From Octopus bimaculoides (lineage: Eukaryota), in NCBI RefSeq assembly GCF_001194135.2, contig NC_068993.1:21806484-21870483 (forward strand): a stretch of DNA of 64,000 bases, in the 5' to 3' direction. A program made the position numbers and the translations under genes. Positions 29,084 to 63,069 of this stretch are shown here, piece after piece; position 1 is the first letter of the stretch; each line of letters begins with the position of its first letter. The notes below the pieces were generated by a model. That model searched no databases, was not told the DNA's origin, and was given only the letters and a program-made list of their open reading frames with translations.

Positions 29084-29134
29084 TGTGTATACATGCATAT
29101 CTATATATAATATATATATATATATGTATGTATA

Positions 29135-30621
29135 TTGGGTCGTCCCATAAACTATGCAGGCTTTTTTATACTTCTTATGTATTTCAAAATTAAGATAAAC
29201 CAAGTTATTTTTTAATCTAAAATATACTCTCCTTCATTTTCTACAAAGCTCTTCAATCTATCTGGTAGACCTCACGGCCCCCACTTCCAAAATTCACTTG
29301 TCCATGACGAAAAATACACCTCCACTACTGTTCTGACGCCGTCTACAGATTTCAGATTGTTCCCATCCGAATGATTTTGATGAGAGAGGAATAAATGTTA
29401 ATCACATCAAGAAAAAATGGGTAGTGGGGAATCAAACTACTCCAGCCTTTGGAATGTCATCTTCGCTGTATGTAGCCGAACATTATCCTGATAGAAGAAC
29501 ATATTTCGTCTTGAAACGAAAGATGGTTGTTTTTCTTCTAGTGCTGACTTAAGCCTCTCAAGATGCTCGCATTAGAACTCCTTAGCTAATGTTTGGTTTG
29601 GGTTTAAAAGTTGAAAGTGAACTAAAAATTTTCATGTTCCACCAAACAGCTAACAACACCTTACGTGTGGGAAGACATTCTTTATCCTTGGAGGCGGTGT
29701 TTCTCCTTTCCCTACCCACTGTCTTCGGCACTAGACATTTTTCTAGAGAACCCATTTCTCGTTACCAGTCACTATTTGATCCAAAAATAGGTTCATCCGT
29801 GAGACGTGACAGCAAAGAAGAGCACATATTCACTCTTTATGCACGATCAGACACCGAAATTTTGTGAGGAACCCATTGACCTAATTTGCTGACTTTACCT
29901 TTTCTGCTCTAGGGACAAGGCTCGAAATTTTGGGGGAGAGCAGGCCAGTCAACTAGATCGACCCCAGTATGCAACTGCTACTTAATTTATCGACCCCGAA
30001 AAGATGAAAGACAAAGTTGACCTCGGCGGAATTTGGGTTAAGGAACGTAAAGACAGACGAAATACCGCTAAGCATTTTGCCCGGCGTGCTAAAGTTTCTG
30101 ACACCTCCCCGCCTTAAATTTACTGACTTTTCCGATGGCATACAAATGTCGATGAACAGTTGAATGACAAAATCCAAACTTCCTGCCAGCTAGTTCTTCA
30201 AAAGTTGCGACGGCATTTTGTTCCACCAGTTTTTGCGGGACGTACTTGTCGAGCTCTACAGATCTACCAGGACGAGGTTCGTCTTATAGGCAGTTGTTTC
30301 TGGGTTAGAATTTCTGGAACCACCGTCCATACTGACTTACGCTTATTGTCCGATCCCCATATACTGCATTAATATTCCTAGCACTTTCCGTTGCACTGTT
30401 TCCTTTCTTGAAATCATAAGCGAAATATGCCGAATATGCTTCTATGTAAATTCAATTATAGATTTCACAAAAGTAACTGTTTAAATCGAACTGCACTCTT
30501 CAAAACTTGCAATAAGATTAAGTCTAAAGTGAAATGATTACCTGCTTTTATAGCGAGTTTGTCCCCCTCCGTCTTTTAGTTCATGCAATAAAAAAACACC
30601 ATTATTTATGGGCTGACCCAA
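29135..30621 (-). mobile_element. Near full-length decayed mariner (Tc1/mariner) in the FMRFamide intron
   Basis: Inverted termini TA-TTGGGTCGTCCCATAAA (29133) and TA-TTGGGTCAGCCCATAAA (reverse complement, ending 30623). Minus strand gives HIRHI, YDFKKGNSATESARNINAVYGDRT, RWFQKF, DEPRPGRS, QDNVRLHTAK and ENEGEYILD*. About 1.28 kb once the nested SINE is removed. Confidence 0.85.
29906..30115 (-). mobile_element. Family-A SINE nested inside the mariner
   Basis: Family-A sequence interrupts the transposase. The same SINE/mariner junction recurs at ~54290. Confidence 0.85.
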
Positions 30622-30820
30622 TATATATACATACACACACACATACANNNNNNNNNNNNNNNNNNNNNNNNNNNNNNNNNNNNNNNNNNNNNNNNNNNNN
30701 NNNNNNNNNNNNNNNNNNNNNNNNNNNNNNNNNNNNNNNNNNNNNNNNNNNNNNNNNNNNNNNNNNNNNNNNNNNNNNNNNNNNNNNNNNNNNNNNNNNN
30801 NNNNNNNNNNNNNNNNNNNN

Positions 30821-30851
<31 letters not shown>

Positions 30852-31874
30852 GAGAGAGAGAAGGGGGAGACAGACAGGTAAACTGACAACGAGCGGTGTG
30901 TGTGTGTGTGTGTGCATTATTAAAAGGAAATTACGACCTTGACTTCGGTGCTTCACAAATATTACTTTCATTACAGAATATATTTTCTTTCAGTTCGTCT
31001 TGTGAGCAGAGTTGTTGTAAAGTAGATGTAATGCAATATTGCGTTTTGTTGCAAACAAACATGTCTTTGTGGCTGCTTTAATTTATTGTTTTGTATAAGT
31101 AAGGATTTGTAAGTATAGAAAACCGAAAAGATAAAAAAGAGAAAGCAAAGAAAAGATGGCAAAGAAAATACTGTCTAGGATGCGTCATCATCTTTGTTCA
31201 ATACAGGTAGGTAAGAGATTTTAAATTGGATTCATTTGTGGAAAGAAGTTAGGAATTAGATTTATGTTAAATTTGATACTTCCGAAGCATTTATAGAAAC
31301 AAAGAGGGTGAAATTCATATGTAAGAACAAGTATTATGTTTTGAGGTGAAAGTTCACGTACAAGCACAAGTTATCTTGAGCAAGACGGTCCATTTAAAAG
31401 TCCTGGATTTGTGAAATACAGTGGGATAGTAGTTTGTGATTCACATACATGCATACAAGCATGCGCGCATACACATAAACACATACACATATATGCATAT
31501 ATATATATACGTCTGTGTGTATCACTCCTAACGTCTGAAATGATATATGTACGTTCATTACTAAAGTTCTCGTAAGCCGTTACACGTATATCTGCATATA
31601 TACACGCAAACATGCATACATTGTCGCTCAAACTGTAGAACTCTTTTACTCATATACATATAGAGAGGCGCATAAGCTGTTATATTATTTTCTTCATAAC
31701 TTCTCTTCGGTTTCTCACCCATAGCGAAGCAGTTTTTGAAACTTGGACGATGACCATGCCGGCTATTATCTTGCGAATGAAATTGGTATGGAAGGCCTAA
31801 ACTATATAGAACACAGTCATGTGAGTGTCCGTGTGTGTATGAGCGTGTGCTATCGTTTGTGTATTTGTGTTCGT

Positions 31875-31923
<49 letters not shown>

Positions 31924-33825: not shown

Positions 33826-33900
<75 letters not shown>

Positions 33901-34750
33901 CTTCCACTTTTTCTATCCCCAAAGGTTTATCAATGTTATCCTCTTATTTATAGATTTATATATTGTTACCAGTAGTAGACAGAGTGGATAAATCTTGTAA
34001 CATACGTATCATATATATGACAAACAGATATATTTTATTACCATCAAGACATAACATAAGATGTTGTGCGTTTGATCAATGGAATGATAATTAATTAAAT
34101 GTATATGTTGTGGAAAAATCAAAATTGTGTCCATTAATAAATTTTGAAATTCTTTATGCAATTTAATGTATGTTTTGTATTTAAACGACAACTGATTACT
34201 ATCTAAATTTGTGCTTTGTTTCCAATATGATTTAATACACACTTGTTTTTTTTTATTTCCTTATTACATCTTGAAGATTTTGGAGAATTTTGGTTCTGTA
34301 TTTCAATATTTATTGTTCTTCAATTCTCGTAGATCACTGTCGTGATAAATTTCATTGAGACACAAATTCAAAATGAAACATGATTGCGGTAGCCCATGTA
34401 CAAAGTATAATATTTAGTCCGTACTTCAAAATATCGGTGTTGCATTTATTAGAGATGCACGATGTTTTATAATTGCGATACTAGACTTACAATTATAACT
34501 ATGTACACCTTGGTGAAACGAAGAAAATGTGAAAGAATACGGAGAATAGTGGAACATTTTATGAACGCAAGCAGCTGCAGCACTGTTCTATCGTGGGGAA
34601 ACCACTGGCTCACCTATCAAATTTGGTATGTATTCAGAGTGAATAATAATAAAATAATAAATCGAAATATTAACTAAATCGATGGATAGATAAGATAGGG
34701 TCGTTGATAGGTACTATGGTCCGTGAGTACTAACATATATAGGTATATAT

Positions 34751-35338: not shown

Positions 35339-36087
35339 TGCAGGCTAGGCTGGGTGGGGATGCTTGTCTCCCCCTCACAAATATAAGGACACAGAAAATG
35401 TGTAAAGGCCGATATGAAGTGGTCCAGCTTCCTAGGGCTAAATAGCGGCAGTATGATTCCCTAATAGCGACTGTAGATAGTTATATGGATGTAAGGATAG
35501 ATATATAGATAGTACGAAATAATTTCATTTAATCTCTAAGGTACATTTACTCAAGCAAAACGTACGCATTGTAATTTCAGTTATATAAATAACGTGTCAG
35601 ATTTAATCACATCAAAACCTCTAATATGAAGAAGACTTAACTTATTAGTCAATAATATATTATAATCTAAGCCTATCATTTCCAAAGGATGTATATTAGA
35701 CGAAAGTGGTATTGTAATATCTGAGCGTTGCGGGGACAAAGGTCATAGTGGAACATAGAATTGTGAAACGAATTAGTTATAGCCCCGTAAATTATGATTC
35801 CGTATTTCTTTAACGTTGTATATATGGTGTTGATAACCTCGGTATATGTAAATAGACCTTATATAGTTATGAATATAGTAGTTGTAGTAGTATTCATAGA
35901 AAAAAAAATCTGTTTGAAACATTGTGAGATAGGGCAAGTCTCTGCGATAACAGTACAATAACAATCATACTAATATTGCTAGTGAGAACAATGCCAATAG
36001 TAATGTCAGTACTAATAATGATGATGTTAATTATGATACATTAAGACAAATATTTATGCCTTTTTTTCTTTTCTTATCTCTTTGCAG

Positions 36088-36899
36088 GTTCTGAAGAAGG
36101 ATTAAAGAGCAAACGCTTTCTTCGTCCAGGAAGAGCTCTTTCTGGAGATGCTTTCTTGAGATTTGGTAAGAATGGTCTAAATTTACCATTCGAAGATAAA
36201 CGATTCCTTCGATTTGGTAGAACTGATCGTCAATTTGAAGATATGCTAAAGGAAGTTTTACAGAGAGCTGAAAACGTTGACAATAGACAAAAGAGATCCA
36301 CTGACAACATTCCTCAAAGCTCAGTTCAAGATGACAGTTCGAAAATTACGAAGAGAAATGCTGACGCCAGTGATAACGGAATGGACAAGAGGTTTATGAA
36401 ATTTGGTAAATCCGGTGATCTTCCTTACGTCAATGAGTGGAGTGACAAGCGTTTCATGAGATTCGGTCGGGAACCTGACAAGCGATTCATGCGATTTGGA
36501 AAATCTGATGATAAACGATTCATGCGCTTTGGTAGAAACCCAAATGAACTTGAAGATAGACTCGAAGAAGGAAAACGCTTTATGAGATTTGGACGGGGCA
36601 ATGAGGAAGAAGAAAAACGGTTTATGAGGTTTGGACGAGATCCTGACAGTAAGTTAATGGGTTATGGTAATAGTGAGGAAGAAAAACGCTTTATGCGCTT
36701 TGGTAGAATGTCAGACGAAGCTGATGCTCAAAAAAGGTTCATGAGATTTGGCCGAAGTGTTGATGATGACAAGGCGAACAGGTTGAAAAAATCAAACGAT
36801 CAGCTTCGTACGATAAGAATGGGACGTAGCGTTGATGATAAAAAGGTGAACAGCGCTAATGGGGATGCGTACCTAAGAATTGGACAAAGTGATGAATAA
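36088..36899 (+). CDS. FMRFamide: FMRFamide precursor peptide-coding terminal exon (copy 1)
   Basis: Strong pyrimidine tract and TTTGCAG acceptor ending at 36087, in frame with the signal exon. Encodes KR-FLRP-GR, ALSGDAFLRF-GK, KR-FLRF-GR, an RQKR furin-type site, KR-FMKF-GK and seven KR-FMRF-G(R/K) units; stop TAA at 36897-36899. Joined CDS is 954 nt, 317 aa. Confidence 0.97.
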
Positions 36900-38389
36900 G
36901 ATGTTGGTACGTTGAGCAGGCTGACGGGATCCGTCCCATCTTTGGAAATAAGAAAATCAACTTTTTTCAAAACAAATAACTGCAGTAACAACAACAAGGA
37001 GCAACATCAGCAAGAATATGAGTAGGAACAAATAGAATATCAATACAACAACAACAATACCAATCAGATTTTGTGATCATATCTTGAACGTTGTGTTTAC
37101 ATCTATCATAAAACATCTGTTGGAGAGTAACGAACTGCTTGTTTAGGAGGAAACATTTTGATTTCTATATGACCAGTTCTAATTGAAAAGAAAGAAAGAA
37201 GGACATTATAAATTCATCAACAACTCAACTCTCTTATGGTGGTAGTTGGTATATTTCTCTATATTGTACAATTTATATAAAACTGGATCGATAGATCCTC
37301 GTCGTATCCAGAAATTCAGGACTTATACCAGCCTTCAATGTAGAGCTTTCTTCAGCATGCTTCATCACTATGTGTATATATGTATATGTGTATATGTGTT
37401 TATGTATACATTTGTCGAAAACCCCACTCTATATATATACCACTGTATATTTATGTTCGTGGTTATGTATGTGCATGTATGTTATATATATATATACATA
37501 TTTATATATGTACATACTATCATATATGTGCACTAGTTTGCATACATAACCCTCTCACATATGCATCAATATGCATCACAGACAAACATATAAATATATA
37601 TACATAGAAAAGAACCACCAAATAGAGTGAGTTTGATGAAATGGTTTTATGAAAATTAAATGTAAATTTTGTGGAGAATTAAAATTTTATTATATATCCT
37701 TCACGAGATTTCAGATTTACTTATCCAACTTAATGTACGTATTCTAATTAAACAATAATTATTTGCTGCCAAATGTATTTCTTACTTCAAATGTAGTTGA
37801 ATGCTTTGTTGTTGTTATATACTGACAAAATTGCTGGTGGTAAATCTGCATATTTAAACTCTTTTTGATTCTTTTATTCCTACATATAAAATTTGCAATA
37901 GAGTTTGGTGAAACATGGCTGTAATCAGAGATCAGGTCTCCGAAAGAATTATCTGTGGGGTCAACAACTGGCATGTTTATTTATTAGGTACAAGAGCTGA
38001 TATTTGTATCTAGTATTTATACATATTTTCAGTGTGATGAACTGAGATGTACCGAAAGAGAGTAAGAAGTGTGCCAGGCTACTAACAATAGTACACAATT
38101 TTATAGGTAGACCTTGCACATGGCGACTGATCTTTCAAAAGTTTGTAGCCGATTATAACAATTATACAATTTAATTGTTGTTCAATTTATTGACACAGTA
38201 AAGATGAAAAGCAAAGTCAAATGTCACAGAAGCTGAACTCAGAGCGTGGAGGGTTATAACTAAATACCTTGTGATAGTTTGTTTGAAGTTCTGCCAACCT
38301 GCTGCCATTATATCTAAGTAGAGGAAGATGATTGTCTTACTAGAAGTACAAGAGTTTCGATACACACNNNNNNNNNNTATTTTGCCTTT

Positions 38390-38590
38390 GCGGCTCCATT
38401 GGTGGCTAATGAGCCCTGCACTTGACAAGCATACACGACTGCAAACATTGCAGACCAAGCTTTCCCCAGTGACTATACGAGCCGTGCGCTTTCGCGTAGC
38501 TCGCTTAAGTTCTTCATGCTGGATACGTGCTCTCTCAAAAGTGTTGATCCCCTCCTTAACCTGCTTCTTCCATCAGTGACGATGACAGGC
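38390..38590 (-). mobile_element. RTE-clade LINE 3' end fragment
   Basis: Minus strand WKKQVKEGINTFERARIQHEELKRATRK followed by a Cys/His-containing tail, typical of RTE C-termini. Confidence 0.6.
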
Positions 38591-38926
38591 ATTGTTCTCC
38601 CAGTCAGTGTCCTGCATATCACAATATATATATATACATACATATATATGGAGTGATCCCTCGACTGTCGCAGGTTTTACGCTTATCATCCTCCTCCTGC
38701 AATGGATGACAGTCCGCGAAGTAGAAAAAGTACTGCACTGTATATGCTATCTTATTTTTTTTAATAATTTGCATATATTTATTTTATAAATGCAAATCAA
38801 TACCTCGGAGGAATCGACGTATGCTTAAATAATAAACCGCAAGAGGTGAACCATGATATGGCGAGGGATTACAGTATAGACAGGTTGATAGAGAGATTGA
38901 GAGAGAGAGAGAGAGAGAAAGAGAGC

Positions 38927-39017
<91 letters not shown>

Positions 39018-39292
39018 AGAAAAAGATTTTTAATAGTTTTGTTTGTATGTTGGCGTGTTTGCAACAAGTGCAACATATTTTTCTACGAATATTTAAATAA
39101 ATATATACTATTTCATACAGTTAAAATAAAATGTAACGGAATGGCCTAGAAGTTTTTATAAGAAAACAAACGTTCCATGTTTTGAATTTCATAATTTGGA
39201 ACAGAATATTTTTCAAAAAAATTTCAAAGTATTCCAGTTAATATAAGTCAGCAAAATATACCAATTTTAATGAAAAGAAATAAATATAGAAG

Positions 39293-39493
39293 GCAAGCGT
39301 GGGTGTGTGGTAAGAAGCTTGCTTTCCAACTATATGGTTCCAGGTTCAGTCCCACTGCGTGGCACCTCGGGCCAGTGACTTCTTCTGTAGCCTCTGGCCG
39401 ACCACAGCCTGAGTGGATGTAGTAGACGGAAAATGAAAGGAGCCCGTCGTATATGTATCTATATATGTCTGCCTGTATATATATGTCTGTCTG

Positions 39494-39541
<48 letters not shown>

Positions 39542-39700
39542 TGTTTGTGTTTGTCCCCTCTACAATCGCTTGACAACCGATGTGGGTGCGTTTACGTTAC
39601 GGTAACTTAGCGGTTCGGCACAATACACCGATCAAATAAGTACTAGGTGCTCCAGCCTGGCTGCAGTCAAATGACTGAAACAAATAAAAGAATAAAAGAA
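39293..39700 (+). mobile_element. Family-B SINE
   Basis: GTGTGGTAAGAAGCTTGCTTTCCAAC...GTTCAGTCCCACTGCGTGGCACC...internal (TA)n...GCAGTCAAATGACTGAAACAA. Confidence 0.85.
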
Positions 39701-41299
39701 TATATGACTAATGCAGCACATATCTGTTTCATTAGTTTACTGTGCTAGTATAGAACCTGACGCTAACGTACGTTGCTACAAGCCGGCGTCCTTTTTAATG
39801 ACCCAATTCTCTTTTAATAAGCTGAATTCATAAACATTTAAAGAGGCTTGAGTATGTTGGGATATCTATCGGTGGCGAAAATTAAAACGATTGCAATACA
39901 AAGAAATAAATCAAAGGAAGAAAAAATACCTTAGTACCAGATCCTCCTGAAATACTGAATTCCAAATATTACCTTCAAAATTCTGAGTTTCTCAAACCAA
40001 GCCTAATCATGAAAGTAATATAACTCATTTCATTTGCTATCATGTGAAGTCGCTGATATTAATTCATGTTTGATTTTTTCGTTACTATCATATTCAGTTA
40101 GAACTTTTTCAAATACTCTGTTAACGCTATCGTGCCATTATCATTAGTGTAATGAGCTAAACTTCTGACTCTGATGCACTGTCTAGAAACTATTTTATGA
40201 TATTGTGGTGCAGTTCATCAACGGTGAAATAATGAATACTATGGCTTAAAATAAAGAAGTAAATTAGGATATATATGTAACGATGGTGAAAGGCTAATTT
40301 GAAACTTAAGCAATTCATTTTCGAAATATACTTAATGACGTTGCTATTACTTTTGATTGCATGAATTACATAAAACTAATGAATGGTATGTCTTCCTTTG
40401 AATGCTTTGTTTTCATGAAATGTGTCTAGGATAATTCGCCTTTGAAAAGACCATCGTTCACTGACGTATACTTAGAACAGTAATCGTACATAAAGCTGCT
40501 ACAGTGACATTGCGTACACTGGTGAGTTTGCACCTTTCCTATATACACATGGATTTCACTGGACTCTTCCGCTGATGAGAAATCGCTCCAATACACCACG
40601 ACGTTCGAACCCTTTTGAACTTTTCTAAAACTCTTTTGGAATTTCTGGTTTTTCCTATTGTTGATTTTTCTTACTCTGTTTTCTCTCAATCCGTACTTTG
40701 ATACTTTGCCCCCTCTCTCTCTCTCTTTCCCTTTCCTTTTCCTTTTCGTCTTCACTTCTTCCTTTCTTCTCCCTTTCACCCCGTTTCTTCCTTTTTTCTC
40801 CTTCTTTCTCAACTTGTTTTTATTTTTCTTCTCCTCTTGCCTCCTATATTTTTTCTAGTTTTTAAAAAAAACGTTTTCTTCTCTTTTTACCTTTTGTATT
40901 TTTTCTCCTCAAGCCTTTTGAAGTTTTTTCTTCACGCCTTTTGAATTTCTTTTGATCGTCTATATTCCGTACATCATTTTTTGTCACCTTCTTCTCCCCC
41001 ATTTTTTCTCCTTTTTCAATCACACGCGATTACAAATCATTCCTCCTCCACCTTCACCACCACATAAAGAACACCTTTCCACATTTCCTTTCCGCTGCTT
41101 TCAACCTTCTATTAATCGTTCCCAACTAAATGAAAAAAAAAAAAAACACGCATCTCTAACCGCGGTTCATTTCTCAGTCGCTGCCTCCATCACCGCCTCA
41201 TCCCCAAAGGTGCCTGACTCCATTTCCACCCTACACTCCACTTTGCTTAAGCCCGTACTACTTCCATATTATCATTGTGCCATATTATGACAGTTTCTT

Positions 41300-43070
41300 T
41301 ATGTCATCGTTACGAGAAGATCCTTTCGGCAGCCAACGTGGTTTTGTGTGATGCTGTCTATTTGTGATTCAGCACAAGAACGTAATACTGATTACATTAC
41401 ATTAAAATCTCATCTCAAATATCTGGATCTTTCTTTATGGCTCATGAATGAAAGTATATATTTGGCATACACAGAAAGATAGGGAATATACCCCTGCACG
41501 CAGGGATCTAATTTTACTGTTCATGGTTTAATCACTTCATCTTGATATGTCCGTGTATTCTTTTAAAGCTTCTTGATTGTGGTACTTTGTCATAAATAAT
41601 ATCACTCTGTATTTCAACTTACTGTACCATCTCTAGTTTATCCTTCTTGAAAAGTTTGTTCAGATAACACAACTGGCATTTGTCATGAGTTTTTTTTCTC
41701 CCCTAATTTCTGTCTTAAATTTGAGGGCATTTCCACTAGATGTATATACATTTATATACATTTCCACTGTATATAATGTATACATTTCCGTCCAGTTCAC
41801 CAATATCTTCAGCAAATCTCTCGTTTGTAAATTTTCTTTCTGAGTTGCTGAATGTACCCACATCGTCATAAAGATGATTGCTCAAAATCCACTCCAGGAA
41901 AATGCTGAAGGAAAACTAGGAAAAATTGGTATTTCTGAAATACTACTGCTTCATTGAATCACCAATGATGCATTGTCCTAGTATTGCTTTCGTTTTCATT
42001 AGGTGTAAAGTTATTATATAGCATGAGTTAACTTCTGCCGTGTGAAAAATTTCCCCATTGTGAGGTACAGCGCTTCATTTATTAAACGCCATCATGAATT
42101 GCATAAAGCTATTTTCATATAGGGCGCAGAGATACAAAATGTACTCAGTTGCGATTCTAACGTTATATAAGCAACAATTTTCTCTGTCTAAGATCTGTCA
42201 TTTCTGGGTGACTCTGAGCATTACTGAGACATGTCAGATCTCGTAGAATAGTTATAAGGATGTCTGCTGTGGCTTTTATTCGTTGCTTAGGGTTTGAAAA
42301 AGATTCTTGTATCTAAGCATATGGAGGTTCCCTGCATTTTCAGCACATTTAAATCACCAACATTTTATTAATGTTATAATTCTGAGTGCATTGTGTCCAT
42401 TTTTCTTTTAGTACAGTAAGAACTTTTTCTTTATTTTTAAACATGTTTTGTTTCGATGTGTTGTCTTTGGGGAAGCCTTTTGCCTGTTCTAACGCTTCTT
42501 GTGTTGTACTGGAATAGCTATTTTTAATTTTCTTTATATTGTAAAGCTAATAATTTTTGCCGTACTTCCATATGTTCTCTCGATATCTAAGTGATCTTAT
42601 AAGTTTTCTTCCTCTTGTTGTATTGTTATTGCCTCTGTTGACTCATCTATCCTATATCTTGTTTATAGCCCTTGGCTTAAACTTACAATGTCTTTTCACC
42701 AGATCTTCACTCATCTTCTCTGTCCTCATAGTGTTGAAATCGTTTGCAACAATCTCTTCGTTAACTTGGAGGAGATTTAATGCTACAAATTTCTTCCAAA
42801 AGTGTTGCCTGAAATTCTTTAGGATATATTGTGAAATTATACGGCCAAAATTTCCTGATGCCTGCCTGAAATTCATTCCAACAAGGTTAAGATCACTACC
42901 TGTATCTGTTCGTTATAATATTTTTGTTGTTTGTATTTACACACGACTGTTTGCATCATTGTCCGAAAGTATAGTCTATCTTGTAGACTTCGATTAGGAG
43001 TACGCTAAGTGTACATTTTGGATGCCTTATTCATGTCTAGGGTAGTATCATGTTTCAACTGACAAACTAG
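41300..43070 (-). mobile_element. Decayed RTE-like LINE (endonuclease to RT)
   Basis: Minus-strand remnants GSDLNLVG, GNFG and IVANDF (APE-like), then FLEWIL, TNERFAEDI (TNLRFADDI-like) and EKKLMTN. Many stops and frameshifts; boundaries approximate. Confidence 0.55.
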
Positions 43071-43767
43071 ATAGAGGTGTCCTCCTTTTATCTCAGAGTA
43101 ATTTCCTGAAGAAGCGATGAAAGCGCTACACACATTTTGTGCATCATTCTCTCACACTCAACTTAACCTGTTAGAGCTGAATGCCGCTATAAGCTGTTTT
43201 CTGATTTAGGTTTTGTTAAAACGGTTTTCGGACTCATAACTGTAAGATCATAAGCTCTCAAAATTATTGGTATCAATTCTGTTTCAATATATCTCGAAGA
43301 ATGGAATGTAAACAACCAGATTGTTTGCAGATGTGATATGCAAGGCAATTATCACCTTCCTCGTGTGATATGCAATAAGGTTATTCAAGACAATTTACAA
43401 GAAATCTTTAATCTATCAAACATTGCCAACGGAAGAGAAACATGGGACTTACATTCACGTGGGAGACGCAACGATACTAATAACAACCTTTATTTACAAG
43501 ATTTATCATTTGCATAAATAATCGATTTGAACTTACACACACTAAATACATGCATAATGTACATGAATGTACTGTATACGAGCATACATATACATGCAAG
43601 CATACATTCACACATTCACAAACTGACACACAGAGGCACATATTGATGCATAAGTGTATATGTATATGTATAGTAAACCCCAAAGACGAAGTTGAACAAA
43701 CACAAAAACCAACAACGCGACGACGTGGTACATGTAAAATATTAGCAGAGCTCAGGAATGAAAGAAA

Positions 43768-43810
43768 GCTAGTTTAACGTTTCGAGCAACGCTCTTCTTC
43801 AGAAAGAAAG
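43768..43810 (-). ncRNA. Degenerate minimal hammerhead-like motif
   Basis: Minus strand TTT-CTGAAGA-aGAGCgttGCTC-GAAAC-GTT-AAA: cores intact and a GAGC/GCTC stem II, but stem I is only ~3 bp. Confidence 0.45.
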
Positions 43811-43958
43811 GAAATTCCAATAGAAAGGAAGACGGGGGAAGAAAATAGCCAGCGATTCACATGTCGTTACATTTTGAAACGACTGGTATATATGTATTTC
43901 AAAATAGAAAGAAAAAGTCATCCAACACGCAGGGATGCTTAGTTTTTTAAACTGCTCT

Positions 43959-44013
<55 letters not shown>

Positions 44014-44149
44014 ATGTATGTGTATATATATGTGTGTGTGTGTGTATGTATGTGCATATGTGTGTATGTGTGCGTGCGTGTGCGTGCATGTGTACTCATG
44101 TCTCAAGGCAGTCTTTGCTACACAGCCATGTTTGTGCTTTTACAAACTT

Positions 44150-45090
44150 TGTGCTTATATATTGCACTCGATCAAATGATGATTGATACTGTCGTCTCCT
44201 CTACTCTAGATTGTACCTTCGCTGTCTAAGTGTTTCTTATTTATCTTTGCCTTTATCAGATTTGTTCTGCGGGCTTGGTCCTGGGCAGCTATAATTAGAA
44301 TTTCTATATCTCGTTCGGTGTTCCCGTCGCCAACGAGAGCCAGCGATATTTATCTCTAACATTCTTGGTTTGCTACATAAATTGGCCATGTAGTTCTATT
44401 TATTTCTATTTATTTGCTATTTTCTTCATTTTCCCTTTGTATTCTCCCACTGTTTCAGTCACTTTTGGGGTATCTCTGGCTGCTCGTAGTATTCGCTCTA
44501 TACTCAGCACAACAATTTTTCAGACCCAGTATCGCAATATTAACAGTGACCTCTGCGTTCAGTAATCCTCTGTCACATTTCTTTCTTGGTAGGTGGAGAG
44601 GGTCGGCATTGCGATTAGAATGGAATCGGTGAGCATTCTAGTTCTGAACATTTCTAGTTCTATCCAAGATATTAAGCTCAAACTTTTTTCCATTTCTGAA
44701 AGGGAGCTGAATATCTCAATATTAGCTCAGCCCATGTATTTATGGTTTAATGATGATCCCTGCATTTAATTTAGTTTCTAGCACCCTAATGATTGTCTAG
44801 TAGTCTTTAGTGGTTTTCTCTCTCAATCTCCTCCCTCTCATTATCTTATCATCATGTGGCACTCATAGATATTTGTATCTCTCATTATTCCACAGCCATC
44901 TAATGATGGTGTCTTGTGTTAATTTTAGGCCCTCATAATTTTATGCGCACATCTGTACCCCCAAATACGTTCCAATATCTTTACTGAATAGTTTCATTCT
45001 TGGATCAAAGAATGTGACCACACTTATTTTAATATATAGCATAATGTCATCCATATACAGGAGGTGATTTACTCTCATCTTAATTTTGAT
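44150..45090 (-). mobile_element. Second decayed R4/Dong-like LINE fragment
   Basis: Minus strand NHLLYMDDI (~45040-45070), LHGQFM and TERDIEILIIAAQDQARRTN. Confidence 0.7.
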
Positions 45091-45693
45091 AAACTCATTT
45101 GTGTGAGAGAGCAATGCATGCCATCAAAGTGACACTGGGATACAAATATACGCAGCCCAATATACACATCGTGACTACCCGTCTGATAAGAGGACATTAA
45201 GCACATGCATCACAAACATATGTGTGCTACATGGCGATATCATATCAAGATATACAGAGCATGACCTTGCAGGTAGGTCCTAAAATTTTTTTTCAGTTTG
45301 AGTAGTCCAACTTGCTCAAAAAGTCGCTGAACGAAGCATAGATGAACTGTCCAAGCCCCAAAGAATTCCTCTCAAAACGTAGTTATGATGCTTCCCCACT
45401 ACTTATGCTCGTGATCAAAGACGCACATATCGTCAGTCACTAAGGGATTTGCTCAACTAGTTAAGGTCGAGCAGCTGATAAGTAAATATGTGGTATTGAA
45501 CAGAATATTTGCTGTAGCCTGTCTTTTATACCATGACAAAGCATGTACATGATAACACTTCCAATCAGTGTGATCAAAAGCCATAAGAATCACTGCCTGG
45601 TACTGCATCAGAGTAGTTATTGCTATCATTATTATTATCATCATCATCATCATCATTATTATTATTATCATTATTATTATTATTATTATTATT

Positions 45694-48003: not shown

Positions 48004-48317
48004 TATTATAATAATAATGATTATTATTATTATTATCATTATTATTATTATTACAATTATGTAGTGTAAATGATAATCCTCGTAGCATATCTAGGGCATA
48101 ATGAACAGGACAATTCGTAAAAAGAAGAATATTTGAATCCCCACATCCAGATTTTGAGATCACTGCATGAAACTTGGCAAGAAATTCCGGAAGAGAATAT
48201 TCATCTGATCTAATAGCGTTTTTGCATTGAAAAATGCAAAGAGAATGTCTTCTAAATATTGGATATTCACATTATAGTAATCAATAAATAGTTTGAATGT
48301 ATAATTTCAGATTTAAA

Positions 48318-48765
48318 TAGGTCATCCCACAAGTTCTGCCCGAATTTTGAATAAGGAAAACAAATGATCAAATATTATATTTAATTATCAATGTACTTCC
48401 TTCCATCTATTTACAAGCTTTTTAATCCCATCAATCTAAAACTTTTTTGGTTTCAAAGCGTAGAACGCTGAAATGTCAGTTTCGACCTCCTCCAGGCTTG
48501 CGAAAGTTATGTCACTCCATAGACTACGAAACAAATGGTAGTCTGAGGGGCAAGGTCGGGAATTTTTTTCCCAACCGAGCTCTTCGATCTTCTCTGATGT
48601 GATCTTTGCAGTGTAGGGGTCGCGCATTGTCCTGATGAAACATCACTCCTTTTACATTCACTAAAGCGGGTCTTTTTTTTCTTCAGTAGACTTGAGCATT
48701 GATTGGTAATCCCACCAGATAGAGAGAACAAACTTTTTCCCATAAAAAACGTGGATCTTTGTCCA
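48318..48765 (-). mobile_element. Mariner transposase C-terminal fragment with terminal repeat
   Basis: Minus strand HQDNAR, KIEELGWE, PSDYHLFRSL and GIKKLVNRW; TA-GGTCATCCCACAAG terminus at 48318. Confidence 0.8.
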
Positions 48766-49278
48766 CAATTATCAAGGTATGCATATACATGTATATGTGT
48801 ATATACATACATACACACACACACACATATATATATACTTGTGTGTGTGTCTGTGTGTATTTTAATAATAAAGGGTAAGAGCAATAATAATTTTACCGGG
48901 TTCCCAGCACGGAAATAGAAATCTTTTAGGCAAATTTTACAAATTATTTTATAATCATATACATAATCATAATAACGGGTCTGGTTTATGTTTCGCCACG
49001 TACCGATTAGAAATAGATGCTAAATTCTTTCTTACTACCATAAAATCTATGAGAAATAATACACTTTTAATGCAGGCAAAAGACAAATAATGAATCAACA
49101 AGGCCGATTAATTATGAACGCGTTTCGAACTTAAAGTAAAACACATTACTTACTGTTTCTATATGAGTATGCGTATATGTATATGTTTATGTATATGTGT
49201 CCATATATTTATATGTATAAATGTCTAATATATATGTAAAGATATATATATATATATGTATATATATATATCTATATA

Positions 49279-49331
<53 letters not shown>

Positions 49332-49754
49332 GTATATATATATGTACATACATATATGCGTGTGTGTGTGTGCGGATATGTGTATGTATATATTTGTGTG
49401 AGTATGGGTATTTATATATATATATACATGTTTGTGTGAGTGTGTACATATGTAGGTGTTATCATCGCAGAAGGTCTCCATATATTGTGAGAATATGATT
49501 GCATGTACTTTTTACCGTTTATAGTTTTCTTACCTATTAGAGTAGCTTCCCTTTTATTCAACAGTTTTTTTACAGCGTCTGTTGTCATAATAGCCGATGA
49601 GAATGCATATTAGCTCTTAGCTCCCGCATATGAAACACTGAGTCCTGTTATTACAACTTACTGATTGTCCTAAACTCTACATATGTAAGTTCCTCTGTTT
49701 ACTTAATATCCAAGTCTCATTCTTTTGTTGTCATTTTATTATTATATATTAGAG

Positions 49755-50013
49755 GAAGAAAAACACCGCGTGCTCCAGTTCTCGTCCGGCTGCAATCATC
49801 AGCTGAGTGCCGTGCTTCGCCGAGATTTCGGCCCATTATGCTCTCCACACGGTTGTCTCACAACAGCTGGACGTATTGCGTTGCAACCGGACTCATGCCA
49901 GTTCTGTGGTCTTATACGCTTTCACAAACCTCCTGGTAATCCAAGCACTGCCCTCAACAGCTTTCTCCCCACATTCCTTGATGATCTTCCTCTTCAGCAT
50001 ATACACCAGCTAC
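49755..50013 (-). mobile_element. Probable RTE-like LINE fragment (truncated by gap)
   Basis: GC-richer block translating to MLKRKI...VWRA*WAEI, resembling the RTE thumb region (RxRWAGHV). Weak match. Confidence 0.4.
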
Positions 50014-50927
50014 NNNNNNNNNNNNNNNNNNNNNNNNNNNNNNNNNNNNNNNNNNNNNNNNNNNNNNNNNNNNNNNNNNNNNNNNNNNNNNNNNNNNNNN
50101 NNNNNNNNNNNNNNNNNNNNNNNNNNNNNNNNNNNNNNNNNNNNNNNNNNNNNNNNNNNNNNNNNNNNNNNNNNNNNNNNNNNNNNNNNNNNNNNNNNNN
50201 NNNNNNNNNNNNNNNNNNNNNNNNNNNNNNNNNNNNNNNNNNNNNNNNNNNNNNNNNNNNNNNNNNNNNNNNNNNNNNNNNNNNNNNNNNNNNNNNNNNN
50301 NNNNNNNNNNNNNNNNNNNNNNNNNNNNNNNNNNNNNNNNNNNNNNNNNNNNNNNNNNNNNNNNNNNNNNNNNNNNNNNNNNNNNNNNNNNNNNNNNNNN
50401 NNNNNNNNNNNNNNNNNNNNNNNNNNNNNNNNNNNNNNNNNNNNNNNNNNNNNNNNNNNNNNNNNNNNNNNNNNNNNNNNNNNNNNNNNNNNNNNNNNNN
50501 NNNNNNNNNNNNNNNNNNNNNNNNNNNNNNNNNNNNNNNNNNNNNNNNNNNNNNNNNNNNNNNNNNNNNNNNNNNNNNNNNNNNNNNNNNNNNNNNNNNN
50601 NNNNNNNNNNNNNNNNNNNNNNNNNNNNNNNNNNNNNNNNNNNNNNNNNNNNNNNNNNNNNNNNNNNNNNNNNNNNNNNNNNNNNNNNNNNNNNNNNNNN
50701 NNNNNNNNNNNNNNNNNNNNNNNNNNNNNNNNNNNNNNNNNNNNNNNNNNNNNNNNNNNNNNNNNNNNNNNNNNNNNNNNNNNNNNNNNNNNNNNNNNNN
50801 NNNNNNNNNNNNNNNNNNNNNNNNNNNNNNNNNNNNNNNNNNNNNNNNNNNNNNNNNNNNNNNNNNNNNNNNNNNNNNNNNNNNNNNNNNNNNNNNNNNN
50901 NNNNNNNNNNNNNNNNNNNNNNGTATG

Positions 50928-50959
<32 letters not shown>

Positions 50960-50970
<11 letters not shown>

Positions 50971-51140
50971 GTATCTGTGTTTGTCCCCCCAACATCGCTT
51001 GACTACCGATGCTGCTGTCTTTACATCCGGTAACTTCGCGGTTTGGCAAACGAATAAATACTAGGCTTACAAAGATTAAGTCCTGGGGTCGAGTAGCTCG
51101 ACTAAACGCGGTGATCCAGTACGACCACAGTCAAATGTCT
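50960..51140 (+). mobile_element. Family-B SINE 3' half
   Basis: GTGTTTGTCCCCCCAACATCGCTTGAC...TAAGTCCTGGGGTCGAG...CAGTCAAATG. Confidence 0.75.
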
Positions 51141-52100
51141 AGACACATATATTTGAATCCAAACGTATATATCCATATACGTTTATTTATCTGTCTAACT
51201 AGCTATCTTTCGATATATTTATCACTATACATATATATAGAGAGAGTAAAGTAGTACGGTATATATATTTTCATTTGTATACATTAATGCACAAAAACTC
51301 ACCCACCCACATTTGTGTAAATTTATGTATGTATAAGTCTGTGTATTTGTATGTTGTATATACATATAAGCGTATATATGCATATATACATACATACATA
51401 CATACATGGCATTCAGCTGTGACCAAAGTTGAAAAATTTCACATTAGGCTTTTTTTTATTTCAATAGGACGTTTCTGAATGCTATCCTGCTCTGTGGACC
51501 AAACTCAAGATATACGTTATTCCCTTCCCAACATCACTGCTATATAGAAAATGATGTTGGGAATATGAAGCAGACTGAAAGTTTCTAAACACGGGATCTC
51601 AGACTACTTCTTAGTAACTCCCACTCTGATGTCGGGAAGTTGATATCCCTGCATAATGTATATCCATCGTATGAAATATATGAAAACAATGTAGTTACAG
51701 CTGAGAAGTAAATTTTCTATTTAAGATTATAAACACTATAAAATTAGGGGTTAATGAAGTTGACTTTTACTTGGGAAATATTGTTTTGAATTTCCAACAG
51801 GGAGAGGTCTATGTTTGTGGTGTTTGTAGTGGGTCATTAGGGATGTGACCTGGGTGCCAATGTAGCGGCACTCCCAAAATGTTTGGGAGCCACTGCCAGA
51901 AAATATATTAGTTTCTAATTTTGGCAGGACAGCAATTTCGGAGAGGAGCAAAATCGGTTACATTGACTCCAGTATTCAACTGGTATTTATATTTCGAACC
52001 TGAAAAGATCGCCTTATTGCCTTAAAACATATTAATGCTTAGCAGTACACAGTCAAGCAGTTACCAGTTCATAAGAAAATTTTGGATACTTAACTGTATG

Positions 52101-53261
52101 TATTGCTTTGGCATCTAAGTTCCCGCAGTTGTTTTTAGATTTAAATGTTTTAAAAGGTTTAATGAAAATTAACAACTAATTAATCAATAATGTATTCACC
52201 CTTGTTGTTTACAACTTCTTCCCAACGTTCAACAAGATTTTCAATACCACGTTGGTAGAAATTAGCCGATTTCGACTCGAAAAATTGATCCAACCAAGCT
52301 CTCAATTCTGTATCAGTATTGAACGAAACTCCGCACATAGCATTTGAAAGAGATCGAAAGAGGTGGAAATCTGTTGGTGCCAAATCAGGAGAGTACGGTG
52401 GGTGTGGCAGCACATCCCAGCTATGCATTTGATTGGCTTCCTTGGTCATATTGGCGATATGAGGGCGGGTGTTGTCGTTCAGCAGAAGAACTCCAGGTCT
52501 TTTCTCGTGAATAGCCGTGTTGAGTCGTTCCATCTGCTGAACATAGAGTTCCGCGTTGCCCGTTTAGCTCCGTTCAAGCAATTCGTAATGGATAATCCCT
52601 TCCCAGTCCCATCATACGTACAACATCGCTTTACGCGGACGAAGATCTTCTTTCACGTGCGGTGTCGCTTGTTTACCGAGGCTAAGCCATTCCTTACGCT
52701 GCTTCATATTGATATACGGGCACCATTTTTCGTCGCCAGTAACGATTCGGTAAAGAAATCGTTGCTTGTGTCCATGAGGTGAGCGGTGACGAGCAAGCAA
52801 ACCAGTGGAGATTGTGGCTCGTTGATTGTTGTTGTTGTTGTCAGTTAAAGCATGCGGAACCTATGCAGCATACTTCTGAACCTTTCCCATCGAGTGAGGA
52901 TGCTTCTCTATTGCAGTGTGGGAGCATTCCATTTTCTCTGCCAGTTCTCTCGCCGTTTGACGAGAATTTTCGTGTAAAAGTTGATTTAATTGCTCTTCAT
53001 CGACCTCAACTGGACAGCCAGAACGAGGTGCGACTTTGAGGTCAAAATTTCCATTTTTGAACATGGCATACCAATCACGAGCGGTTCTTTCAGCTATGGC
53101 ACCCTCTCCATACATAGCACAAATGTCACGAGCAGCTTTTGCGGTCTTAGAATCTTGATTAAAAGCAAAAAAAAGGAAGTGTCGAAAATGCTCGTTTTTC
53201 TTGACATTCCGTACTAATGATCTGAAAATAAACAAGAATTAACTAAAATTAACTAGAAAAA
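52101..53261 (-). mobile_element. Mariner (DD34D-type) transposon with inactivated transposase
   Basis: Minus-strand ORFs 52861-53235, 52612-52800 and 52180-52533 form one transposase: HTH (AARDICAMYGEGAIAERTARDWY), *VPHAL, RIVTGDEKW, LLNDNTRPH and HPPYSPDLAPTDFHLF. Two Trp codons are mutated to stops. Terminus at ~52101; the other end lies in the gap. Confidence 0.92.
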
Positions 53262-54771
53262 NNNNNNNNNNNNNNNNNNNNNNNNNNNNNNNNNNNNNNN
53301 NNNNNNNNNNNNNNNNNNNNNNNNNNNNNNNNNNNNNNNNNNNNNNNNNNNNNNNNNNNNNNNNNNNNNNNNNNNNNNNNNNNNNNNNNNNNNNNNNNNN
53401 NNNNNNNNNNNNNNNNNNNNNNNNNNNNNNNNNNNNNNNNNNNNNNNNNNNNNNNNNNNNNNNNNNNNNNNNNNNNNNNNNNNNNNNNNNNNNNNNNNNN
53501 NNNNNNNNNNNNNNNNNNNNNNNNNNNNNNNNNNNNNNNNNNNNNNNNNNNNNNNNNNNNNNNNNNNNNNNNNNNNNNNNNNNNNNNNNNNNNNNNNNNN
53601 NNNNNNNNNNNNNNNNNNNNNNNNNNNNNNNNNNNNNNNNNNNNNNNNNNNNNNNNNNNNNNNNNNNNNNNNNNNNNNNNNNNNNNNNNNNNNNNNNNNN
53701 NNNNNNNNNNNNNNNNNNNNNNNNNNNNNNNNNNNNNNNNNNNNNNNNNNNNNNNNNNNNNNNNNNNNNNNNNNNNNNNNNNNNNNNNNNNNNNNNNNNN
53801 NNNNNNNNNNNNNNNNNNNNNNNNNNNNNNNNNNNNNNNNNNNNNNNNNNNNNNNNNNNNNNNNNNNNNNNNNNNNNNNNNNNNNNNNNNNNNNNNNNNN
53901 NNNNNNNNNNNNNNNNNNNNNNNNNNNNNNNNNNNNNNNNNNNNNNNNNNNNNNNNNNNNNNNNNNNNNNNNNNNNNNNNNNNNNNNNNNNNNNNNNNNN
54001 NNNNNNNNNNNNNNNNNNNNNNNNNNNNNNNNNNNNNNNNNNNNNNNNNNNNNNNNNNNNNNNNNNNNNNNNNNNNNNNNNNNNNNNNNNNNNNNNNNNN
54101 NNNNNNNNNNNNNNNNNNNNNNNNNNNNNNNNNNNNNNNNNNNNNNNNNNNNNACTGGTTTATCGATCCCGAAAGGATGAAAGACAATGTCGACCTCGGC
54201 GGAATTAGAACTGAGAACGTAAAGACAAACGAAATACCACTAAGCATTTCGCCCGACGTGCTAAATTTTCTGCCTCCTCGCCGCTGCCTCTTCTGATGGC
54301 ACACAAGTGTCGATGAAGGGTTGAATGACAAAATCCAAGCTTCTTTGCTATTTCATCAACAGTTACGATGGCATTTTGTTCCACCAGGTTTTGCGGGACG
54401 TACTTGTCGAGCTCTACAGATCTTCCAGGACGAGACTCGTCTTATAGGCTGTAGATTCTGGTTTGGTATTTCTGGAACCACCTTTCCCACTGACTTATGT
54501 TTATTGTCCTATCCTCATATACTGGATTAATATTGCTTGCACTTTCGTTGCGCTGTTCCTTTGTTGAACTCATAAAGCAAAATATGCCGAATATTCTCCT
54601 CTGTCACTTCCATTATAGCTTTCGCAAATATAACTGTTGAAATCGAACTGCACTCTTCAAACTTGCAATAAGGTGAAATGTCTACCTACTTTTATAGCGA
54701 GTTGGTGTAGGTAATGTATCCGGACCCCCTCTGACTTTAAATTCATGCATTATTTATGGGCTAACTCAATA

Positions 54772-60804: not shown

Positions 60805-60853
<49 letters not shown>

Positions 60854-61606
60854 TAGATAGATAGATAGATAGATAGATGGTTGGAGAGATGATAGTATAA
60901 AAGAATTTCATTTTATCTCTAAGGTACATCTACTCAAACACAACGTTAGGGGTGATTTCCACACGAATTATTTTGAAGCTCCCTGTCAAAATATGAGAGG
61001 CAAACACACAGATACACAAACGCGCATACATATAGACACGCCGAAACACAAACACACGTGCACATTGTAATTCAGTTATATAAATAAAGTGTCATATTTA
61101 ATCACATCAAAGCCTGTAATCTGAAATAGGCTTAATTTATTAGTTAATAATGTATTATAACATTAAACTAAGCCTATCATTTCGAAAAGATGTCTATTAG
61201 ACGAAAGTGGTTTTGTAATATATATTAATACGTAATATCTCAGCGTTGCGGGGATAAAGGTCATAGTTGAACATAGAATTTTGAAATGACATTGTTAAAG
61301 TCCCATAAGTTATGATTCCATACTTCTTTAATGTTGTATGCCTGGTATTAATAACCTCGGTATATGTAAATAGACCTTATATAGTTATGAATATAGTAGT
61401 TGTAGTAGTATTCATAGAAAAAAAAATCTGTTTGAAACATTGTGAGATAGGGCAAGTCTCTGCGATAACAGTACAATAACAATCATACTAATATTGCTAG
61501 TGAGAACAATGCCAATAGTAATGTCAGTACTAATAATGATGATGTTAATTATGATACATTAAGACAAATATTTATGCCTGTTTTTTCTTTTCTTATCTCT
61601 TTGCAG

Positions 61607-62040
61607 TTTCTGAAGAAGGATTAAAGAGCAAACGCTTTCTTCTTCCAGAAAGAGCTCAAGATGACAGTTCGAAAATTACGAAGAGAAATGCTGACGCCAG
61701 TGATAACGGAATGGACAAGAGGTTTATGAAATTTGGTAAATCCGGTGATAAAAAGGTGAACAGGTTGAAAAAATCAAACGATCAGCTTCCTATGATAAGA
61801 ATGAGACGTAGCGTTGATGATAAAAAGGTGGACAGGTTGAAAACATCAAACGATCGGCTTCCTGTGATAACAATGGGACGTAGCGTTGGTGATAAAAAGG
61901 TGAACGGGTTGAAAACATCAAACGATCAGCTTCCTGTGATAACAATGGGACGTAGCGTTGGTGATAAAAAGGTGAAAAACGCTATAAGACAAGGCCCTAC
62001 TGGGTATCCGTACCTAAGAATTGGGCGAAGTGATGAATAA
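61607..62040 (+). CDS. Remodelled duplicate of the FMRFamide peptide exon (candidate alternative terminal exon, or second exon of a paralog)
   Basis: Intact TTTGCAG acceptor at 61606, same phase 1, open to TAA at 62038-62040: (I)SEEGLKSKRFLLPERAQDDSSKITKRNADASDNGMDKRFMKFGKSGDKKVNRLKKSNDQLPMIRMRRSVDDKKVDRLKTSNDRLPVITMGRSVGDKKVNGLKTSNDQLPVITMGRSVGDKKVKNAIRQGPTGYPYLRIGRSDE. Expression unproven. Confidence 0.7.
61747..61974 (+). repeat. 72-nt coding tandem repeat, 3 full units + 12 nt
   Basis: Units 61747-61818, 61819-61890 and 61891-61962 derive from the single unit at 36765-36836 in copy 1. Confidence 0.95.
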
Positions 62041-63069
62041 GATATTCCATCTTTGGAAATAAGAAAAACAACTTTTTTCACAGCAAATAAATGCAGTAAT
62101 AACAAGGAACAACATCAGCAAGAATTTGAGTAGGAACAAATAGAATATCAATACAACAACAACAATACCAATCAGATTTTGTGATCATATCTTGAACATT
62201 GTTTACATCTATCATAAAACATATGTTGGGGAGTAACGAACTGCTTGTTTAGGAGGAAACATTTTGATTTCTATATGACCAGTTCTAATTGAAAAGAAAG
62301 AAAGAAGGACATTATAAATTCATCAACAGCTCAACTCTCTTATGGTGGTAGTTGGTATATCTCTCTATATTGTACAATTTATAAAACTGGATCGATAGAT
62401 CCTCATCGTATCCAGAAATTCAGGACTTATACCAGCCTTCAATGTAAAGCTTTCTTCAGCATGCTTCATCACTATGTGTATATATGTATATGTGTATATG
62501 TGTTTATGTATACATTTGTCGAAAACCCCACTCTATATATATATACCACTGTATATTTATGTTCGTGGTTATGTATGTGCATGTATGTTATATATNNNNN
62601 NNNNNNNNNNNNNNNNNNNNNNNNNNNNNNNNNNNNNNNNNNNNNNNNNNNNNNNNNNNNNNNNNNNNNNNNNNNNNNNNNNNNNNNNNNNNNNNNNNNN
62701 NNNNNNNNNNNNNNNNNNNNNNNNNNNNNNNNNNNNNNNNNNNNNNNNNNNNNNNNNNNNNNNNNNNNNNNNNNNNNNNNNNNNNNNNNNNNNNNNNNNN
62801 NNNNATGAAATGGTTTTATGAAAATTAAATGTAAATTTTGTGGAGAATTAAAATTTTATTATATATCCTTCACGAGATTTCAGATTTACTTATCCAACTT
62901 AATGTACGTATTCTAATTAAACAATAATTATTTGCTGCCAAATGTATTTCTTACTTCAAATGTAGTTGAATGCTTTGTTGTTGTTATATACTGACAAAAT
63001 TGCTGGTGGTAAATCTGCATATTTAAACTCTTTTTGATTTTTTAATTCCTACATTTAAAATTCAAAATA

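Follow-up and report, generated by a model that had tools for sequence, protein, structure and literature searches.

An old partial duplicate of the FMRFamide gene in Octopus bimaculoides with a remodeled downstream peptide exon

Does the genome of Octopus bimaculoides hold a second gene for FMRFamide? Few neuronal markers and neuromodulators are used as much as this peptide in cephalopod neurobiology, where it is treated as the product of a single gene and a single transcript. The question is raised by a stretch of 64,000 nt from this octopus (contig NC_068993.1 of assembly GCF_001194135.2, positions 21,806,484 to 21,870,483 of the forward strand; hereafter the window, whose own coordinates are used throughout and which holds 12 runs of N), in which a preliminary description had reported that the intron, the peptide exon and the 3′ flank of the FMRFamide gene are repeated ~25 kb downstream in the same orientation. 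Self-BLAST of the window, used to delimit blocks, and a MAFFT global alignment of the two copies confirmed this repeat: positions 29986-37893 (copy 1) and 54154-63062 (copy 2) are co-linear on the same strand, ~25 kb apart, in ten BLAST blocks of 79-99% identity (E-values from 0 to 1e-46, far past chance; eight blocks are given in Table 1), and comprise most of the 7.2-kb intron (6.1 kb), the peptide exon in full and ~1 kb of sequence 3′ of it. At somewhat better than even odds (a probability of about 0.55), we consider this to be an old and degenerate partial duplicate, whose downstream copy is a decaying or drifting relic exon.

We aligned both copies with the single syntenic loci of O. vulgaris (L006) and O. 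sinensis (L007). Over 2,400 unconverted intron sites, 121, 177 and 161 substitutions fell on the branches leading to copy 1, copy 2 and O. vulgaris, respectively, and the same branches carry 25, 44 and 45 noncoding indels. Pairwise, the unconverted intron differs by ~13.3% between the copies, by 12.6% between copy 1 and O. vulgaris, and by 14.9% between copy 2 and O. vulgaris; the genome-wide similarity of O. bimaculoides and O. vulgaris is 92.4%, and the heterozygosity of O. vulgaris is ~1.1% (PMC6472339). With ~13% divergence and 71 noncoding indels between them, well above a heterozygosity of ~1%, and with private insertions in each, the copies are not alleles, and the locus is an old paralogous partial duplication, as had been proposed. 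The segments described as specific to one copy were placed roughly right, the non-aligning parts being ~34760-35555 in copy 1 and ~60755-61055 in copy 2 in the global alignment. Likewise, it holds that only the 3′ part of the gene is duplicated: the signal-peptide exon (28699-28840 from its start codon) lies outside of the duplication, 1.1 kb upstream of the repeat start, and tblastn found no second one assembled in the window.

The copies are about as far from each other as copy 1 is from O. vulgaris, which would put the duplication at roughly the age of the bimaculoides-vulgaris split. There is no second copy in the O. vulgaris and O. sinensis loci, which reach only 10 kb past the stop codon (equivalent to ~46.9-47.2 kb of the window) and end short of the position orthologous to copy 2. 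Two intron segments common to both copies are missing in O. vulgaris and O. sinensis: one of 570 bp (32223-32793 and 57886-58456), with no other copies and with a flanking repeat of only 4-5 bp, and part of another of 2.46 kb (28927-31383). These could have been either gained by insertion on the bimaculoides side or deleted on the vulgaris side of the split; if they are insertions, then the duplication is later than the species split. The intron also contains a hypervariable spot: in O. vulgaris and O. sinensis a ~300-bp unit is repeated there in tandem about three times (L006, 13086-13885), whereas copy 1 holds unrelated sequence of ~720 bp (34751-35474), and the ~300 bp present in copy 2 include a TA/CA microsatellite.

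Identity between the copies is distributed as a mosaic. In the tract that spans the intron/exon junction, the 221 aligned nt at the end of the intron (35863-36087) show no differences between the copies and 28 (12.7%) with respect to O. vulgaris, and a 94-nt stretch of the exon (36326-36419) is identical in both copies, with three differences from O. vulgaris. The tract at 34111-34416 behaves in the same way, with 3, 9 and 25 differences in the three-way comparison. Tracts that are so alike in the two copies and yet diverged from O. vulgaris indicate gene conversion after speciation, cross-assembly of the copies being a less likely cause. In turn, the 3′ untranslated region (UTR; 37043-37890) is 97-100% identical across copy 1, copy 2 and O. 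vulgaris, and the similarity of the copies there is thus largely due to constraint; 16 states in it are common to both copies against O. vulgaris. Its private changes amount to 14 substitutions and four indels in copy 2 versus three substitutions in copy 1, so that copy 2 is evolving ~5 times faster than the constrained copy 1. The identity of this region between O. bimaculoides and O. vulgaris or O. sinensis (97-99% for 37043-37890, and also for 62151-63062) exceeds that at synonymous coding-exon sites (pS 0.076) and that of the intron (~88-90%), which suggests a strong post-transcriptional constraint.

Copy 1 is the functional, expressed FMRFamide gene. Exons 28681-28840 and 36088-36899, separated by the 7.2-kb intron, correspond exactly to XP_014775928.1 (isoform X1, 317 aa), and the splice from 28840 to 36088 is present in two RNA-derived Logan contigs (L001 and L005) that run into the 3′ UTR. 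The peptide exon encodes seven FMRFG[KR] units, one FMKFGK, one FLRFGR and ALSGDAFLRFGK, matches the FARP profile (Pfam PF01581) with an E-value of 1.1e-16, and is 97-99% identical to that of O. vulgaris, with a pN/pS of 0.16. O. vulgaris and O. sinensis are co-linear with 18083-47169 of the window, on both sides of copy 1, which is therefore the positional orthologue of their single locus. As in O. vulgaris, whose precursor peptide counts have been tabulated, the gene consists of a signal-peptide exon and one peptide exon that specifies seven FMRFamide, one FLRFamide and ALSGDAFLRFamide (PMC4208409); it is the O. bimaculoides orthologue of the cephalopod FMRFamide precursor, exemplified by those of Sepia officinalis (FMRF_SEPOF), Doryteuthis pealeii and O. 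vulgaris/O. sinensis (XP_029644126.1). The two transcript contigs additionally contain, after intron-like sequence, a 34-nt 5′ UTR exon (GACAGACG...GGCAG; within nt 1-94 of L001 and nt 1-63 of L005) that was not found anywhere in the assembled window, which puts the first exon and promoter of the gene either inside a gap or at a distance of over 28 kb upstream.

A second peptide exon had been announced in copy 2, which stands with respect to the presence of an exon homologue but not to its being FMRFamide-coding, given that 10 of the 11 RFamide-type units are lost. Compared to copy 1 and O. vulgaris, the copy 2 exon shows five length changes (-189, -348, +72, +72 and +15 bp). The 189-bp deletion eliminated ALSGDAFLRFGK, the ALSGDAFLRFamide unit, together with FLRFGR, and the 348-bp deletion eliminated all seven FMRFamide units, creating junctions that are specific to copy 2 (GAAAGAGC/TCAAGATG at 61655/61656 and GGTGAT/AAAAAGG at 61749/61750); with only 2-4 bp of microhomology, these junctions are not k-mer assembly collapses. 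The C-terminal unit, of which there are 1.3 copies in copy 1 and O. vulgaris, has expanded into an array of 72-bp repeats, and the deduced product reads SEEGLKSKRFLLPERAQDDSSKITKRNADASDNGMDKRFMKFGKSGD, followed by three units of 24 residues (...PMIRMRR and twice ...PVITMGR) and by ...GYPYLRIGRSDE. Members of the FMRFamide-related family have multiple x-RF-Gly units between basic cleavage sites; copy 2 keeps a single one, KR-FMKF-GK, next to PMIRMRR, two PVITMGR and YLRIGR, and its exon (61609-62037) had no match to the Pfam PF01581 FARP profile (cut-off 15.5 bits) at E<=0.01. The copy 2 exon is, then, a remodeled derivative stripped of FMRFamide units and not a second FMRFamide exon. Its acceptor region is identical to that of copy 1, with the polypyrimidine tract and the AG retained, except for a 1-nt insertion, and a G-to-T change at the first exon base makes the split codon Ile instead of Ser. 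Judged from the sequence, copy 2 would thus have the acceptor and polyadenylation signals of a distal exon, while the window has only the signal-peptide exon upstream of copy 1, and an 892-N gap precedes copy 2.

The two exons differ by 22 nonsynonymous and only one synonymous changes (pN 0.077, pS 0.014), as opposed to the pN/pS of 0.16 for copy 1 against O. vulgaris. Changes that are almost only nonsynonymous indicate that purifying selection, which acts on copy 1, does not maintain the downstream exon. The nonsynonymous excess is, nevertheless, not significant when changes shared among repeat units are counted once (p ~0.15-0.17; 0.15 in a binomial test). In a simulation with ~18 random substitutions, the frame was expected to remain open in 56% of cases, and we therefore rejected the open frame, on its own, as evidence of function. 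Our reading is that constraint on the copy 2 exon is relaxed, with neofunctionalization as a minority possibility.

The locus has already been partly noticed in existing annotations. The NCBI Gnomon model XP_014775931.1 (P0004; ‘FMRFamide-related neuropeptides-like isoform X2’), which is not on record as a gene product, does not recognize the duplication but contains the signal-peptide exon and copy 1 sequence through FMKFGKSGD, followed by the exact copy 2 tail: its C-terminal 127 residues are the translation of copy 2 positions 61657-62037, its N-terminal part includes the 63 codons that are deleted in copy 2, and it jumps 25 kb between exons. The only splice option for this model is a single AG/GT within the 94-nt stretch that is identical in both copies, with an acceptor lacking a polypyrimidine tract; the model is thus probably an alignment or assembly chimera of two paralogous exons and not a true splice form, albeit a hint that the copy 2 tail occurs in RNA data. 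Additionally, an open reading frame (ORF) of 109 aa (61711-62040), without a signal peptide, is a called gene in GCA_001194135.2. An exhaustive phmmer search of protein collections (1.84 billion representatives or 5.8 billion clusters), together with a search using XP_014775931.1 as the query, retrieved no protein with the copy 2 tail other than XP_014775931.1 itself, whereas copy 1 transcripts are present in Logan RNA assemblies.

The duplicated piece measures 8-9 kb and carries the greater part of the last intron, the one peptide-coding exon and all of the conserved 3′ UTR, but neither the promoter nor the signal-peptide exon; it would have been placed ~16 kb downstream of the gene. Gene conversion later re-homogenized several patches, that at the intron/exon junction among them, two deletions in the downstream exon stripped the FMRFamide, FLRFamide and ALSGDAFLRFamide units, and the C-terminal spacer unit expanded. 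Copy 2 would most likely be a relic exon without a promoter or signal peptide of its own, although it might serve as a minor alternative last exon if transcripts that read through were spliced to it from the signal-peptide exon. Several observations weigh against decay and favor instead a functional alternative last exon, with the signal-peptide exon splicing to either the proximal peptide exon, for a product rich in FMRFamide, or the distal one, a possibility that we deem unlikely. The polypyrimidine tract and AG acceptor are identical in the two copies and the splice phase is the same; the stop codon and a 3′ UTR with three ATTAAA signals are retained; and the frame is open, with all five exon length changes being multiples of three as compared to 22 of the 71 noncoding indels. 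Three of those five are not forced to be in frame by the repeat unit, for which the probability by chance is ~0.03. A change from Q to R creates a new Gly-Arg amidation site (YLRIGR). The distal product, predicted to be amidated, would comprise one FMKFamide, two ...LPVITMamide and one ...PYLRIamide. The excess of pN over pS (0.116 versus 0.022 in the tail) could likewise reflect positive selection instead of decay, and we regard as somewhat more doubtful still that the distal exon is a young functional last exon evolving new amidated peptides, possibly under such selection. Isoform X2, with its copy 2 tail, and the 109-aa call suggest some RNA or predictor support for copy 2, and the search of protein collections is a weak negative, for it did not retrieve the annotated 109-aa call either. 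Against a functional distal exon, the transcript-derived proteins in the collections lack the tail while copy 1 transcripts are there; isoform X2 depends on a weak internal splice site in identical sequence; more than half of the frames would stay open by chance; the nonsynonymous excess falls short of significance; the copy 2 UTR evolves ~5 times faster than that of copy 1; and use of the distal exon needs read-through of a strong proximal poly(A) site.

Co-linear copies on the same strand agree with the tandem arrangement of the preliminary description, but their linkage rests on scaffolding across N gaps 50014-50922 and 53262-54153, and a real duplication could have its second copy elsewhere in the genome. 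Copy 2 consists of four contigs of 1.2-3.3 kb, with two ~900-N gaps before it and one of 6469 N after it, and tracts of near identity (250-850 bp, 98-100%) could have misled the scaffolding, the mate pairs anchored there drawing these contigs to the gene. The chromosome-scale version 2 of the assembly has the same contigs and gaps and is no independent check; for instance, 18699-46899 of the window is 100% identical, gaps included, to CM046613.1:21,825,182-21,853,382 (GCA_001194135.2). Nonetheless, a placement elsewhere seems to us rather improbable, since the four contigs are in the exact order and orientation of copy 1, repeated gene-conversion tracts are easiest to explain by close linkage, and the arrangement was kept by Hi-C scaffolding. 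A further alternative is that copy 2 is an independent second gene, with its own 5′ exon or exons and promoter in gap 53262-54153, which may hide an exon, or in unassembled sequence upstream. Homology of copy 2 starts at a contig edge, so that the duplication may run further 5′, and the 109-aa ORF has been called as a separate gene. However, the signal-peptide exon of copy 1 lies 1146-1287 bp upstream of the homology start, more than the 892 N estimated for the gap; the Mos1-like element to the left of the gap has no homology to the region upstream of copy 1; and the 109-aa ORF has no signal peptide, all of which makes an independent gene quite improbable. Finally, uncollapsed haplotypes or an assembly duplication artefact might be expected in a short-read assembly with many gaps and some tracts of 98-100% identity, but we hold this to be highly improbable: substitutions and indels place the copies as far apart as another species, in animals with a heterozygosity of ~1% or less (PMC6472339), each copy has private insertions, and the junctions unique to the copy 2 exon, with their short microhomology, do not result from k-mer collapse.

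Table 1. Features of the FMRFamide locus and of its partial duplicate (window coordinates).
Feature	Position	Strand	Remarks
Signal-peptide exon	28681..28840	+	ATG 28699; ends in phase 1; donor GT 28841; tblastn; contigs L001/L005 align 28679-28842
Copy 1 of duplicated segment	29986..37893	+	Self-BLAST; synteny with O. vulgaris/O. sinensis loci
Copy 1 peptide exon, coding part	36088..36899	+	Stop 36897-36899; Pfam FARP 58.5 bits
Copy 1 3′ UTR and conserved flank	36900..37893	+	97-99% identity to O. vulgaris; ATTAAA at 37655, 37678, 37747
Spacer between copies (16 kb)	37894..54153		First 9 kb syntenic with region 3′ of O. vulgaris/O. sinensis gene
Spacer gaps	38368-38377, 50014-50922, 53262-54153		N runs
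Copy 2 of duplicated segment	54154..63062	+	Self-BLAST, global alignment; four small contigs
Copy 2 exon, probable relic	61607..62040	+	Acceptor AG 61605-61606; stop 62038-62040 at homologous position; phase as in copy 1
72-bp (24-codon) tandem array	61744..61976	+	TRF: 3.2 copies, 93% matches
Copy 2 3′ UTR	62041..63062	+	97-100% identity to copy 1; 30-bp deletion after stop; ATTAAA at 62824, 62847, 62916
Putative gene-conversion tract	35838..36420	+	Copy 2: 61356-61749; three-way site comparison
Second high-identity tract	34111..34416	+	Copy 2: 60152-60451; 95-97% between copies, ~87-91% either copy versus O. vulgaris
BLAST block	29986-30629/54159-54777	same strand	78.7%
BLAST block	30940-33229/56567-58878	same strand	83.1%
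BLAST block	33233-33368/59168-59306	same strand	89.2%
BLAST block	33429-33963/59305-59843	same strand	81.6%
BLAST block	33961-34763/60005-60755	same strand	83.5%
BLAST block	35560-36138/61056-61657	same strand	89.1%
BLAST block	36750-37489/61876-62595	same strand	88.1%
BLAST block	37636-37893/62805-63062	same strand	98.8%

We would class the locus as an old partial duplicate of the gene that has undergone gene conversion. It resembles other partial (3′-end) gene duplicates and relic exons homogenized by interlocus gene conversion in the lack of a promoter and first exon in copy 2, in its mosaic divergence with converted tracts, and in a relaxed constraint that is seen in faster UTR evolution, large deletions and almost exclusively nonsynonymous change. 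It departs from them in that the frame is still open, acceptor, stop codon and poly(A) signals survive, and all exon indels are in frame. In squid, the literature describes FMRFamide as a single transcript from a single gene (PMC3892160); unlike there, in O. bimaculoides the 3′ two-thirds of the gene are present twice and the second exon is remodeled. As summarized in that source, the FMRFamide gene of Lymnaea stagnalis undergoes cell-specific alternative splicing from a common signal-peptide exon (Saunders et al., 1992, via PMC3892160), and a similar layout is possible in the octopus, with one 5′ signal-peptide exon and two peptide-coding exons of different content. In Lymnaea, however, both products are expressed, processed and conserved, whereas the distal exon of the octopus is a recent, degenerate copy of the proximal one without purifying selection, and no transcript of it came to light. 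The evolutionary point is a modest one, namely that a multi-copy neuropeptide exon can undergo duplication, lose its canonical peptides and grow in what used to be spacer. Only expression of the distal exon would make the locus interesting; a functional distal exon would be an independently evolved cephalopod counterpart of the two-precursor FMRFamide locus of Lymnaea. In practical terms, probes, primers and read mapping based on the 3′ UTR or on the exon-intron junction match two places that are 98-100% identical.

None of the gaps in the window is within coding sequence or any exon, so the reading frame is unaffected by them. The contigs of copy 2 (54154-55774, 56563-59897, 60005-62595 and 62805-64000) follow the order of copy 1. 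Across gap 62596-62804 (209 N) the sequence is continuous and the gap length overestimated: a conserved 3′ UTR segment of 146 bp is found at this place in both copy 1 and O. vulgaris, and the flanks align perfectly. The flanks of gap 59898-60004 abut neighboring positions of copy 1 (33963/33961), and 45 bp beside it are common to copy 2 and O. vulgaris and missing from copy 1; this gap probably hides part of an ancestral segment of ~270 bp. The copy 1 gap 30648-30820 is spanned by ~110 bp of copy 2, and gap 55775-56562 falls within an insertion found only in copy 2. At its 3′ end, the duplication terminates at 37893/63062, just past the three conserved ATTAAA signals. Conversely, its 5′ limit is hidden, as homology of copy 2 begins at the contig edge, either 5 bp (54159, BLAST) or 0 bp (54154, MAFFT) past gap 53262-54153. 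The assembled 5′ edge is inside one copy of a dispersed repeat of ~200 bp, possibly SINE-like (24478-24691, 24795-25001, 26768-26958, 29900-30116, 54159-54284 and, on the minus strand, 8625-8752; 72-87% identity), which may have mediated the rearrangement. We rejected a retrocopy origin, given that the repeat contains intron sequence and lacks a poly(A) tract where it ends on the 3′ side, as well as a larger duplication unit of 24 kb (copy plus spacer), because 63063-64000 and the sequence at 70470-72040 (L009) have no match to the spacer.

Copy 2 sits within an island of small contigs with large gaps on both sides; in the chromosome-scale assembly, the 6,469-N gap follows immediately after window position 64000 (equivalent to 64001-70469; 12291-18759 of L009). 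Just upstream of copy 2, a Mos1/mariner HTH_48 fragment (52861-53235, minus strand) adjoins the gap. The spacer also contains a fragment of a non-LTR retrotransposon (RVT_1, zf-RVT; 46208-47603, minus strand), the 3′ part of which (to ~47169, the limit of the comparison) is found at the orthologous position in O. vulgaris and O. sinensis with ~84% identity. In a different octopod, Argonauta hians (GCA_054771915.1, BAAFZT010000020.1), the complete FMRFamide gene, with an identical 281-aa product, occurs twice on one chromosome, 9.3 Mb apart and in opposite orientation (L002/L003, at 45057483-45079088 and, reversed, 35721301-35742906). The two 21.6-kb loci are 98-99% identical throughout, and represent either a very recent, large inverted segmental duplication or assembly redundancy.

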